64,000 nt of DNA from contig OZ037769.1 in the NCBI GenBank assembly GCA_964035545.1, forward strand, positions 16,026,633-16,090,632, written 5' to 3'. The position numbers were made by a program, and so were the translations under genes. Shown here piece by piece: positions 6,987 through 61,278 of this stretch (positions are counted from its first letter, which is position 1; the number at the start of each line of letters is the position of its first letter). Source of the DNA: Bugula neritina. Taxonomy: Eukaryota; Animalia; Bryozoa. The notes under the pieces were generated by a model that worked only from the letters and a program-made list of their open reading frames with translations, did no database searches and had not been told where the DNA came from.

Positions 6987-9900
6987 GGCTTGATAATAGC
7001 TAAGTATAACTATAGTTTATTAATGCATTTCCAATACTTGGGTTTTTATATATTTTTAGTAATAAGGTGAGTTACAAAAAAGCCATGCTGGCCGTTAAAC
7101 TCATGCGTTTATATGATATATATAGCTATATAATATTATGTTGCAACTTTATGTTTCTGTTCAACATGCTTTAAACTGTCATTGTTTTGCATTTCAATAA
7201 TTATGCTTAATTTTATTTGTTTTAAAATTGCTTTTTACATCTTTATTCTTTTTATCTTATTCAACTCTCTAATAAGTTATATATAGCTATACATATGCAT
7301 GTATAAGGTATCTGCAGATTATGCATTATATAGGAAATCATTTTCTTAGGTCAAATCTGATGAATAATTCACACTGAATAGACTTAATATTATATTTTCA
7401 TTCCTTTAATATTATTATAAATATTTGTTCAATTTGGGGATTATTATAAGTGTTAATATAGTTTTAGGAAGTTCTGCATATATAAATGTGAGTTACTTTT
7501 ACACATTTCAAATGTTTTTCTATGCTATTTATTTATGGTATAATTTTTTTGATTTTTCAACAGAAAAGTATAATGCAGCAAAAATTATTATATATACAGA
7601 AATTATATATATAGTTTAGCTAATTATATAACATATACATGTGCACATGGTATAACATGTAACTTCATGTAATAGTATATGAATTTTCATATAATGCTGT
7701 AACCCTGTCTCAGAATACAAGTATACAGGTACACACAGGTTACAGGTTCATCATAAGTTAGCCTGCAGAGATCTCTTATACATTCACCAGCTCACCAGGT
7801 GGAGCTCATTGCTTAGCTACTTCCTGTATTCTGAGATAAATATCGTCAGTTTGAATATTCTAAACTGCCTGCACTCTGTAGGTGTTGTGTACGCCTGCAT
7901 GGGGCCACACTGGAATGACGTGCAAGAAATCCTGTTTAGCCCAAGAATTGGACATCATGAGTGGGATTTTCAGGCTGAGAAAGAAGATGTTCAATCTAAT
8001 TGGCTTATTATCATTTATAGCAGCACACTTTTTTATTTCAATTTACGTTTTAGCTTTTATTGAACTGAATCGAAGATAGTTTCATATAATTTGCATTTCC
8101 GTTCCTATAATATTATAAGATCTAAAGTGAAGTTGAACGCTAACATCATTGACTAATAAATTTTTTCACTGGCAACACACTCACTGTGTGTGGCAGGTCT
8201 CTACGGGTTTTCTTGCAGGTCACGTAGTGTGGCCCTACGCTTAGACATTGAATAACTCCTGAAACTAAAACAGGTAATTCCACCAAATTGCAGACGAAAT
8301 AATGCTCCAACACCAGATTTCTTTTGACATTTGCACACATCTGGTTGTATATGAATATTTTATGCATAGAGCAGGGCATAATTTCACAGTATCTCGTCCT
8401 CAGACATAACACTTATGTACCAATGCGAGATACATTACATCATAATTAAATGTTGTCTATCGGCAAAAATTTTGCAGTAGCCAATCATAGTACTATAACA
8501 GGGCAGTCTGAGTGTAGTATCCCGTTTATCAGCATAATTATAATAGCCCGTAGTTGAAGATGGAGTTGGAAGCTTTTCAAATACCTCCCGCATATAATAG
8601 CATTTATGCTAGTCCTTAAAACTAAATAAACATTATGGTAGACCAATAATCATGAAAGCTCTACTCATTTGTAACTGGAGGATTTGCAGCACCACAATAC
8701 TAAATTTCTCGCATTGGAGGTGCTTAGGCTGTGTTGTCATAGTTATATGTACTTATTGGGGCTTGGTATAAAATTAAACCTGACAATTATAAGAATTAAA
8801 GTATTATTGCTGTGGTTTCAACTGACCAACTTTGGAGTTATTATCTCGATTCTTTGTCAGGAATGGTTAGATAATTTCATGCAATAATGAGTTTTGGCTT
8901 TATATCATTATAAATAATGAGTTTTGGCTTTATATCATTATAAATATCTACATTGATGGCAGCACTGAGCTAGAATTCTAATATCTTTTCAAGCTCATTG
9001 GGTGGCAGCTTATCGGCTAAATTTTATGCAGATATTGAATAATGTGGTTTGATAGTTATGCTATATTGTTAGGTTCACAAGCATCTTTAAAAAGTTATAA
9101 TTATTGCATTGACCATAGGTCAAAAAATTACCTAAAGAGAGGGCAGACAACTCCAAAAGATTGGTTTCGCAGAAGCAAGTAAAATTCAGCTAAACTGAAT
9201 ACTCCAACTGATCAACATTTTCATCTATTGAAATTGAAGAAAAGTTAAATATTATTATACTATTCTAATCATGAATAGGCACAAGCTAAAAAGATATTTA
9301 TTTCAAAAAATATAAAAAGTAAAGTAACACAACAATGTTTGCAAACGCAGACCTAAAAATGTGAATATTCTAGCTAGAAATTAAGTCTGAAATTCAGACT
9401 TTTCTAGGTTGAATTGACTTTAATTGACTCACCAGAAAAAACAATTAATAAAATTATAAAGACAAGCATATAATGAAAAATGTAGTTCATTAGCAAAACT
9501 GGAGGAAAGCACTTTTTTTCTAGAAATTGTTGGATTACATAATACATTTTTGTGCAAATGATATTTTTTAATGAAATGAAACTGTTTTATTGTTTGGCTA
9601 GATGAAGTTTCAAAAGTAATTTTAATATTTTCTCAAATAAAGTAGACATGCACTCCATTTTCACATTTTTTGGCAAAACATATGATTGGGATTCAGTAGT
9701 CAATCAGTTAAGCTTGACACAAGGAGTTGTCACATCCATCCCAAAGAACAAGACCATCTACAATAACAAACATGGAAAGTACTTAAAATTACATTTAAGT
9801 TTACAATAATCCTTAAAATATATGTTGCCTTCTGCAAATGCTAAATAAAACACGATGTAATGCTATGTTTACTTAGACTAAATCTTGCTGACTTACAATG

Positions 9901-10189
9901 AAATTCATTCATTTCAATTTGAAAATTCCTGTCAATAACTTGACTCTATGCTAACAACTAATTGTAATACCAAAATCACACTGCTACTTTTAGTTTAGGG
10001 AATTTATTTTCATTATTAGTTCAATATTCAGCAGAGGTTTTTCTTTAATGAACAAACAATAGGCATACATGCAGATGAAAGATTAGGTCTAGTGAATACT
10101 AATCTTGTGCCTAATAAAAAAAAAAATGAAAGACTGCATGAAAAACTAACAACTCTAAAAAATTGCAATTTGAATGAGGCTCAGGCTTT

Positions 10190-58673: not shown

Positions 58674-58871
58674 ATGGATGCTAGCCAAACTAATAATTGC
58701 AACTTAGTGAAAGATGATCTGATTGCTTTAACAGAGGTTAAAACTTGGAATATTGAAGCTCTGAAAGACTTTTGCAGAAAAAGAGGTTACAAGATTACTG
58801 GTTCAAAGGATGAGCTTAGAGCTCATGTATATTTTCTTTATAACAATCAAATAAGAGTTGAAAGGTTATAG
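58674..58871 (+). pseudogene. Truncated SAP-domain-like ORF running into the right TIR
   Basis: WNIEALKDFCRKRGYKITGSKDELRAHV fits the SAP pattern (LK..C+.RG...G.K.EL). Confidence 0.6.
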
Positions 58872-61278
58872 CAGCTCTAAACAGGCTGGTTACACTCAGC
58901 AAAACAAATGATAATATGACAGCTGCCAGCTTCAGATTTGCTCAATAACCAAAACCACAAATATGCTTTGAAGTTTTCTTTTTCTGAAATTTATCAATAA
59001 CAAAATTTTTTAAAAAAATTCTGAAACTGCTCATATGTGTGCTTATGCCAAAATATCAATCTCAGAAAAAATGAAACATATACTGGTAATGGTCTTCACT
59101 CAAACCTTACATTTCTACTGATTTTATGGGCCTTCTATATATCATCGAGACTGCCCCAAATCTCTGTAGGGGGAGACAACTTTAAAATACAAACCACTCT
59201 AGAGGGATGTCTGAAACTCCTCTATTGAAGAAAATCAATATGTTGTGTTCTATATACAACAACAGTTTTTACATTGGTTTGTTAATTACTTCATAAATCA
59301 TTTATTACTTCATGCAATATTTGTTCCTGCAATTTTGCAGAGTGGCAAAATGCATTTCAAAGACATATATTAAGTGATTTTAATTATACTAGAATTTTCA
59401 AACTAAGAATTTTTGGGGAGTTTTCTTCTTCCTAAGACATATGTGGCAATTGAACACATAATAAGTTGTAGGCCACAACTCCTTTATACAACCTTGCAAG
59501 AAATTATGCAGCCATTTAAATAGAAAAGGAATTATTGAATTTATTTATTCAACATTATTAGTATTTTATAAATATTTGTTGCATTTAATTAATGAGCATA
59601 AAATTTGTTTTACAAATACTGTAATTAACAGCATATGATAAAAATATATTATATATACTGGTATATATTTTGTATTGTATTAGATTTAGGCTACATTGCT
59701 AATTAAAATGAGTTAATGGCTAAGTTTAAATATCTTCGACTTATAGATTACATTTTTATGTGCTATAAAAATTTAACTCGTTTGTTACGACATTTCTCCA
59801 TGCATAAAAGCAAAACTTACGGCAAGAAATCCTTAGCTAGAAAGATAAATAATAATTTACTTTAATTACATCAAAAGCTAATATCAGCAAGCATTCTATA
59901 AATAATGGGAATTTACCTAGTGTAATTTTTCTTAAACTAGCTAAGCTTGCTTGGTACTTTAATAAGTTTATTGGCATAGTGTATTATGTTATACTTATAT
60001 ATTTTTAAGACTTTAAGGAAAATGATGTTTTAGCTGCGTTATTCCTAATGCAAGCCTTATAAATTTACAATATATACTAAAATATTATATTTGTAATTAG
60101 AAAGAAAACAAATTACTTTCATAAACTTATAATTATTGCATTCTGTTATTGTTAATGCTAGAATAACAAATTGAACACGGCATATGCTTCCCTAACCAGA
60201 TTCTTTTAAACGGATTAAAAATAATTTGTCAATTTCTAATTATGAGGAACAAACTCCTCGGTAGTTTCTACATTTGCGCATGATTTTATCAAAATAGGCT
60301 TGCTTTTGTGTCAACCTGTAGCCAGTGCAACTATACTTTATGTAACGAGTAAAACAGACTCATTTCAAAGTACACAGTCTAAAGGGTAGGAATTACTACA
60401 AAGAAAAGTGCCGGTTAAAAGTTAATTATAATTGGAAATAAGGTGAAATATCAGTCAGAAATTAAAAAGTGTCAACTAAAAAGGTGTATTGTTATTTCTT
60501 TTTGGCTTAATGAAAATGTTTTTTGAGGAAGAAGTACGAGAAACATCTAGGAGGGGTTCATATCCACCACTGGCGACTACCTGTTTATTGATGAAGAACT
60601 ATCCAATGATAGTACAGTATTATGGTCTTTTGCCTTATAATTGGCTTTGATTTTTTTATGTCTAATTACGAGATACTAAACAGATGCAAAGTATGTTGTG
60701 CATAGGCAGTTTTTTTATGTCTCTAAACAACATTCTAGGAAAATATATACTGGCATAGAGATGCTTCTTATAGAAAGTTAATTCAGCATGAAACAAATTA
60801 GCTCCTTGGAATGTGGTGTGTTGATAAGAATTAAAGAGAATAGAAATGTAACCTGATATGGCAATTTAAAATAGCAAGTAAATATAACAATGCATAATAT
60901 ATTATAGCAGTTTAATATAACGATTTATTATAGCAAGATATAAATATATATAACAGTTGATAGAAATTGAAGCCATTTTATTATTTTCATCAGCCTCTGC
61001 TTATATCCCACAGTTACTTGCTTTATTTTAAATTGAGAGAGATGAGTTTGTTATTTATTGTACTTTTCTAATATTTCTTGTATGATGTAAATTCTTCTTT
61101 CTGTTTAATATACACATACTATTAGTTCAACATGATTTGATTTACAAAATGATTTTTCGTTCACATTTAACTGCTCAGTTTAACTATTGTCAACAACTGT
61201 CTATATTATGTAACCTTTGCATACTCCAAACAAAACAATTTTAATCTATGATCTTTCACAGTCTGTAATTACTCATAC

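Follow-up and report, generated by a model that had tools for sequence, protein, structure and literature searches.

A very large, apparently non-autonomous DNA transposon, probably of the hAT type, nested inverted within its own copy in Bugula neritina

The stretch examined here, 64,000 nucleotides of contig OZ037769.1 in the Bugula neritina assembly GCA_964035545.1 (positions 16,026,633 to 16,090,632 of the forward strand; hereafter the window, numbered from its first base), is occupied between 8364 and 60760 by two copies of one long element, the second lying inverted inside the first. The original prediction had proposed such a structure, a ~20-kb cut-and-paste element inserted in reverse orientation into another copy of itself. 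We rebuilt the outer copy (O) by joining 8372-31223 to 50605-60752 and took the reverse complement of 31224-50596 as the inner copy (I); all four breakpoints were reproduced both by self-BLAST of the window and by global alignment of O against I, with blocks of the left part of O (8372-31223) matching the reverse complement of 38254-50596 at 92-99% identity. The two predicted 8-bp target duplications, GCATAGAG around the outer copy and CACATATG around the inner, were located as stated, and so was the intact target at 38254-38261, whose 8-mer is the reverse complement of CACATATG. The chance of each such 8-mer duplication at a fixed position is ~1-2e-5, and the duplication length is 8 bp in both copies. 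O measures 33,000 bp, or 20,477 bp once its three nested insertions are taken out; the predicted sizes (about 20.5 kb outer, 19,373 bp inner) agree with our recomputed ones. One element with fixed ends has inserted twice here, the second time into the first copy and inverted, and its left and right ends have come to lie in direct orientation, as in the double-Ds arrangement of maize. The G+C content of the window is 33%, and that of B. neritina 35%.

Both copies open with CAGGG and close with TACTG. The CAG...CTG ends that had been predicted are present and can be refined to an imperfect, in-register inverted repeat of 38 bp, in which the two ends agree at 10/14 and 25/38 positions; no other CAG-initial 38-mer in the window scores above 21/38. 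Just inside the ends lies a 22-bp motif consisting of the core GTATCTCGT, a spacer (N) and ACATAA. It is confined to about 170 bp of the four ends, with six matches in the window where 0.03 are expected. The inner copy has three within its leftmost 170 bp and each right end has one nearby, so that a left end with three motifs faces a right end with one motif and one half site. These subterminal motifs are presumed transposase binding sites. Dissimilar ends with asymmetric subterminal repeats are also found in Hermes (PMC10368747).

The same termini recur at other loci. When the stop-free piece 47762-47932 was used as a query against 1.84 billion proteins, it matched three Bugula neritina gene models (81-83% identity) and two fragments from Joint Genome Institute (JGI) collections. 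At the three B. neritina loci (L006, L007 and L008, from assembly GCA_010799875.2), homology starts exactly at the left terminal base of the element and is preceded by three different flanks. Compared with the window, these copies show ~87% identity in BLAST alignments, or 90% if only substitutions are counted; among themselves they are 98.3-99.5% identical. A JGI contig (L011), found with a right-end piece, is 95% identical over 236 bp and ends exactly at the right terminal base next to a new flank. Because the three loci share the left terminal base and the contig the right, both termini are termini of the family. Counting the window copies, the left end is seen in five copies with five different flanks and the right end in three copies with three. 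The two ends never occurred together on an outside contig; full length and the 8-bp duplications are accordingly established only for the two window copies. Other genomic copies do share the termini and have different flanks, and the claim that the element moved as a unit is strengthened, as is its place in a multi-copy family. The JGI members (L009, L010 and L011, from 3300002729 and 3300003318) are 82-89% identical to the window in the interior and 95% at the right end, which indicates that several subfamilies exist. Scans of metagenome, viral and bacterial collections for exact DNA matches to the ends found none, a result of little weight given that the patterns are 1-2 bases off the B. neritina ends. 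The feature itself is real and well supported; coordinates are collected in Table 1.

Table 1. Coordinates within the window of the two element copies, their ends and target duplications, and the segments that distinguish them
Positions	Strand	Feature	Basis or remark
8364-8371	+	Left 8-bp target duplication of the outer element (GCATAGAG)	Same 8-mer at 60753-60760
8372-8540	+	Left end of the outer copy: 38-bp terminal repeat (8372-8409) and subterminal motifs like GTATCTCGT-N-ACATAA	
8372-31223	+	Left part of the outer copy (A), terminating in the 8-mer duplicated by the inner copy	Matches the reverse complement of 38254-50596
12770-13002	+	233-bp segment in the outer copy, deleted from the inner	
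15662-15981	+	320-bp segment, lost from the inner copy	Flanked by two ~70-bp direct repeats, 91% identical
16564-18441	.	1.9-kb element of another family, resembling a miniature inverted-repeat transposable element (MITE), outer copy only	8-bp duplication GTAGTAGT
19166-26668	+	Gypsy-type long terminal repeat (LTR) retrotransposon, outer copy only	LTR regions 310/311 identical; 4-bp duplication GCAG
29842-30419	-	578-bp internal piece of a decayed non-LTR retroelement, kept by the outer copy, deleted from the inner	Reading frames run across
31216-31223	+	Left 8-bp target duplication of the inner element (CACATATG)	Self-BLAST
31224-31320	+	Right end of the inner copy: terminal repeat (31224-31261), subterminal motif (31299-31320)	
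31224-50596	-	Inner copy, inverted, 19,373 bp, without a long open reading frame (ORF)	Self-BLAST, global alignment, ORF list, Pfam
38254-38261	-	Single uninterrupted target 8-mer inside the inner copy (the empty site of the nested insertion)	Self-BLAST
38750-41050	+	Decayed non-LTR retrotransposon, cargo of both copies, many stops and frameshifts	Six-frame pieces, composition scan
50431-50596	-	Left end of the inner copy, three subterminal motif copies	
50597-50604	+	Right 8-bp target duplication of the inner element (CACATATG)	Self-BLAST
50605-60752	+	Right part of the outer copy (B)	98.4-98.8% to the reverse complement of 31224-38253
56105-59223	.	3.1-kb element, outer copy only	~373-bp terminal inverted repeats (371/373); AT duplication
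57088-58607	.	Second copy of the CAGTG MITE, inside the 3.1-kb element	8-bp duplication TAGCAAAC
60656-60752	-	Right end of the outer copy: terminal repeat (60715-60752), subterminal motif (60656-60677)	
60753-60760	+	Right 8-bp target duplication of the outer element (GCATAGAG)	Same 8-mer at 8364-8371

The three B. neritina copies also have one long interspersed nuclear element (LINE) at an identical internal position, which implies that the family moves with nested cargo. In L006 the LINE block and further filler add 5.8 kb before homology picks up again (12540-18300 of that locus, a LINE with 90-bp tandem repeats, plus filler). Also in L006, 16290-16562 encodes an AAA P-loop fragment (nSTAND3, E 4.5e-5), possibly a captured host exon. 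In L008 the element is interrupted at 14458-19400 by a Maverick/Polinton-like insertion, whose frames are capsid-like, protease-like and of the integrase-chromodomain type; a fragment of an LTR element comes after it. The gene models hit by our query, the B. neritina "hypothetical proteins" EB796_006335, EB796_002936 and EB796_009219 (P0281-P0283), have a common last exon inside the non-coding element and are probably false gene models.

Global alignment of O and I yields 19,007 matches over 19,292 aligned bases, an identity of 98.5%. The 285 substitutions comprise 183 transitions and 102 transversions, and there are 34 gaps. Because of these substitutions and of the insertions and deletions specific to each copy, the pair is not an assembly duplicate. 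The outer copy has three insertions; the inner has three deletions (233, 320 and 578 bp) and no insertions. Each of the three length differences is read as a loss in I: the 233-bp one because an outgroup contig (L009) keeps the first ~55 bp of the segment, the 320-bp one because the ~70-bp direct repeats around it are more diverged than O and I and so predate their split, and the 578-bp one because the piece is internal to a retroelement. Divergence between the copies is mosaic (overall range 0.4-2.3%), running at 2.25% in the first 4.2 kb, 0.44% in the next 2.5 kb and 1.23% in the rest (chi-square p ~6e-6), and the changes in the divergent part divide almost evenly, 49 being O-derived and 45 I-derived.

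These figures bear on the suggestion of local hopping in the original prediction, which in its direct form makes the inner copy a daughter of the outer by a hop from the sister chromatid, with all differences arising later. We consider this quite possible, if somewhat short of an even chance: a one-step hop predicts uniform divergence, and the observed divergence is mosaic. The overall identity speaks for a local hop, as does the fact that a chance landing in a 20-kb target would require a high copy number; in maize, double Ds often arises as Ac transposase favours local transposition (PMC7584900), and local hAT insertions are enriched (PMC8903248). The even 49/45 split, however, suggests segments of different age, and the deletions all lie in the inner copy with the insertions all in the outer. 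The mosaic would need either later gene conversion between the inverted arms, from which it could stem even after a local hop, or a donor elsewhere in a recombining family, as in hobo_AC (PMC3014272).

The insertions peculiar to the outer copy belong to other families. The MITE at 16564-18441 has CAGTG...CACTG ends, a 24-bp perfect terminal repeat and a long TA-rich core, and its two copies in the window are ~98% alike in their arms. This CAGTG family fits hAT better than the large element does. The Gypsy element sits in an AGT microsatellite and retains gag and pol frames, with a stop in pol at 24095-24097; it is young. An extra 151-amino-acid ORF in it (25619-26074) had no Pfam match. Relatives of its pol and of the LINE flanking the large element occur in marine contigs and in Watersipora at 55-58%. 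The 3.1-kb element, which we take to be ISL2EU-like, contains a SAP-domain fragment at 58674-58859 (Pfam E 1.8e-5).

What the large element itself carries is mostly non-coding. Apart from one low-complexity frame, the inner copy has no ORF of at least 100 amino acids, and hence no intact transposase frame. About 30 of its ~300 stop-free pieces were searched one by one against Pfam. No transposase was found in these searches, in the ORF list, in six-frame pieces, in a scan of amino-acid composition against shuffles, in a splice-site scan, in PDB or by tblastx against the outside loci; specifically, no BED, DDE or dimerisation region of a hAT transposase was found in the element, no searched piece matched KDZ, CxC, SWIM, THAP or P-transposase, and Rfam gave no match. 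Among three related sequences covering the left 4.4 kb, insertions and deletions in multiples of three number 7/37, 5/28 and 2/20, and this lack of a frame-preserving pattern implies no coding constraint there. The sole protein-like region of the inner copy is the retrotransposon at ~38750-41050, which by eye we assume to be R4/Dong-like, no tool confirming this; its pieces drew blanks in Pfam and PDB. For two further stretches, 36882-37048 and 49161-49361, a Kolobok-like and a CENP-B-like reading, respectively, were rejected, as no tool supported them. Exon-like pieces with good donor sites at 37719-37800 and 36882-36949 are isolated and mutually out of phase, and searched singly they had no match. 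Alternative genetic codes (TAA/TAG as Gln, or TGA as Trp), applied to frame coordinates only, were rejected: almost no such codons occur in the retroelement frames, and the element gains no long frame. A small palindromic MITE-like repeat lies inside the element at 36282-36683 and 52183-52490, and a 77% similar copy lies outside it, at 3150-3347 of L007.

The interior consists of a decayed retroelement, simple repeats and AT-rich host-like filler, and no captured intact host gene was identified in the element. Its ~20-kb size is due to accumulated junk cargo rather than to extensive coding sequence, and non-autonomy is the most plausible reading. Such an interior resembles ordinary repeat-rich host DNA, and the unit may have begun as a macrotransposon or compound element, in which the ends of two short elements captured ~20 kb of chromosome and the whole was then amplified. 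The AAA P-loop fragment in the extra cargo of L006 points the same way, and for Ds macrotransposons movement of up to 100 kb is documented (PMC3260210). We nevertheless hold this origin to be rather unlikely: searches of the element for internal partner ends or internal 8-bp duplications came up empty, and stepwise gain of cargo is directly visible in B. neritina (the LINE and filler of 5.8 kb). It concerns origin only and is compatible with the explanation we prefer.

Termini shared by independent insertions, a fixed 8-bp duplication and inverted, if imperfect, repeats establish the element as a member of the terminal inverted repeat (TIR) cut-and-paste elements. We are confident, short of certainty, that it represents a very large, non-autonomous DNA transposon of the cut-and-paste type in cheilostome bryozoans, ~20 kb long, probably hAT, and in double-Ds configuration. 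Its membership in the hAT superfamily, judged from sequence features, is moderately probable. That estimate draws on the 8-bp duplication, the match of the left end to YARNG, the asymmetric subterminal repeats and the precedent for cargo; 8-bp duplications and YARNG termini are hAT features (PMC3014272). The insertion in the same window of two copies of a second CAG-ended, 8-bp-duplicating family, the CAGTG MITE, counts in favor of the preferred explanation as a whole. With the defining transposase absent from the evidence, the hAT label of the original prediction is likely rather than established; its claims about structure and about movement as a unit hold.

Several observations weigh against our reading. 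The four junctions are taken from the assembly, and no copy outside the window has its two ends on a single contig. The left end (CAGGG) fits YARNG, and the right end (CAGTA) deviates at position 5, in the JGI copy as well; its terminal inverted repeats also match each other less well than those of typical hATs do. Neither a transposase nor an autonomous partner turned up in searches of the element and the outside loci, and for this reason the superfamily is judged from the ends. A decayed or finely spliced transposase gene could conceivably lie in the right half.

A different assignment keeps the same structure but places the element in the Zisupton/KDZ or P superfamily, with an interior that may retain remains of a multi-exon transposase. 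Zisupton elements make 8-bp duplications and are multi-exonic, and Kyakuja elements have CA..TG ends without inverted repeats (PMC12730594, PMC9297572); a non-autonomous medaka element classed as P likewise has an 8-bp duplication (PMC2820524). The weak terminal repeat here and the two exon-like pieces with good donor sites would suit such an element. The blank searches for its characteristic domains in the ~30 pieces run against Pfam, the unconstrained left 4.4 kb and the isolation of the out-of-phase exon-like pieces speak against it, and we rate the assignment as improbable without being negligible. Although inverted repeats longer than 10 kb are difficult to assemble, an assembly artefact or an ordinary inverted segmental duplication without transposition is very improbable, given 1.5% divergence with a 1.8:1 transition bias, copy-specific insertions with their own duplications, two 8-bp duplications that arose independently, the recurrence of these termini in other assemblies, and an A-B'-A'-B order with three target 8-mers that a single inversion or fold-back leaves unexplained. 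Tandem duplication followed by inversions was also rejected, as it needs two exact inversions and fails to yield the three target 8-mers.

On the reading we prefer, a probable hAT element in double-Ds configuration, a DDE transposase encoded elsewhere in the genome, most likely hAT, would act in trans. It would recognize the two dissimilar ends through the imperfect 38-bp repeat and the subterminal motifs, pairing left with right, and would cut at CAG...CTG, excise the unit and join it to the target with an 8-bp stagger, the interior of dead retroelements, simple repeats and host-like filler travelling as a passenger. The first copy inserted with duplication of GCATAGAG, and a second then entered the first, inverted, with duplication of CACATATG; the outer copy gained its three insertions and the inner lineage lost its three segments. 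In this scheme we infer the superfamily, the supply of transposase in trans, the binding of the motifs and the recombination or conversion between copies. If transposase were present, the directly oriented pairs 8372/31224 and 50596/60752 could, by analogy with maize, undergo sister-chromatid transposition and break the chromosome, and the outermost ends could mobilize all 52,381 bp. The locus is old, which suggests that it has been tolerated or silenced.

Around the element, a nearly full-length RTE-type LINE lies at 1800-5740 on the minus strand, with a 970-amino-acid ORF for endonuclease and reverse transcriptase and one in-frame stop (2142-2144); its closest relatives (58-73%) are in marine contigs, and one cluster of them includes Watersipora proteins. 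A tandem array of 25 copies of a 22-bp unit occupies 1199-1754, and its ORFs and weak Gag_p10 matches are by-products of the repeat. Another array, of five 52-bp units, is found at 62609-62871. The segments 61191-61445 and 63356-63603 are duplicates (89% identical) bearing an exon-like piece on the minus strand, open at 63441-63534, frameshifted in the other copy and without a Pfam match. Near 63085-63150 there is a related short match that extends into the site of the outer insertion, and the element may therefore lie within a host gene that is tandemly duplicated and partly decayed. This paralog resembles the rebuilt outer empty site at 73% over 64 bp; since it reaches only 1-2 bp past the duplication, it was rejected as independent proof of an empty site.

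The locus offers a natural animal cut-and-paste element that has repeatedly moved ~20 kb of passenger DNA, more than the 9-15 kb of the lizard hobo, and its cognate transposase, if found, would be of interest as a large-cargo vector. As a natural animal example of an arrangement that breaks chromosomes in maize and is absent from the B73 reference, it also provides a testable link in bryozoans between transposon configuration and rearrangement. Bryozoan repeats are largely unclassified (PMC13326412). Repeat annotation misses or splits such elements, and false gene models result, as with the three B. neritina hypothetical proteins. A bolder generalization, which we put forward as doubtful, is that bryozoans have an undescribed, recently active family of 20-26-kb cargo-carrying TIR elements that spreads retroelements and host fragments and would exceed in size every other hAT-type (or unclassified 8-bp-duplicating) unit that is routinely mobile in animals. 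The locus would then be a natural animal double Ds, breaking chromosomes or moving as 52 kb whenever transposase is present. We found no published description of this transposon family in the literature.

The closest structural counterpart is the chromosome-breaking double Ds (state I Ds) of the maize Ac/Ds system, itself hAT. There a non-autonomous element of ~2 kb stands inverted in its own copy, each with an 8-bp duplication. The bryozoan locus shares the inverted nesting and the directly oriented left and right ends; it differs in that its element is about ten times larger (20 kb versus ~2 kb), in that it lies in an animal, and in being old enough for 1.5% divergence and nested insertions. 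Directly oriented Ac/Ds end pairs lead through sister-chromatid transposition to breaks, deletions and inverted duplications (PMC3239180), and double Ds forms by local transposition and breaks chromosomes (PMC7584900). In B73, nested Ds is rare and double Ds is missing, probably selected against (PMC3260210).

In cargo, the nearest animal counterpart is hobo_AC of Anolis carolinensis, at 9-15 kb described as the longest hAT reported (PMC3014272); the original prediction remarked that hATs usually span a few kb, and large, cargo-laden ones have this precedent. Both animal elements were enlarged by genomic DNA with old retroelement fragments, and hobo_AC copies are structurally variable and mosaic through inter-element recombination (PMC3014272). 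The 9-15-kb forms of hobo_AC are autonomous, however, and its non-autonomous derivatives measure 1.3-3.4 kb, whereas the bryozoan element is ~20 kb (with 5.8 kb more at one site in the B. neritina form) and no transposase was found in it. Among plants, Pack-hAT, Ds2/Ds-like filler elements and Ac/Ds macrotransposons similarly place non-autonomous ends around unrelated filler, and some Ds reach 12.7-24 kb via LTR insertions, with a macrotransposon having moved up to 100 kb (PMC3260210; PMC8903248). In contrast to these, the large form here is itself repeated, and its cargo is common to several loci and to more than one assembly.

P elements make duplications of 7-8 bp. Together with Zisupton/KDZ they resemble our element in the 8-bp duplication, the CA..TG ends and possibly a long multi-exon body, and differ in that no KDZ, THAP or P-transposase remnant was detected in the pieces searched. 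A review of giant eukaryotic transposons includes CACTA elements of 16-20 kb and no hAT (PMC6431247). Every ingredient of the bryozoan locus has a precedent, and it opens no new class; what is new is an unusually large, cargo-laden, non-autonomous TIR element in the double-Ds configuration.

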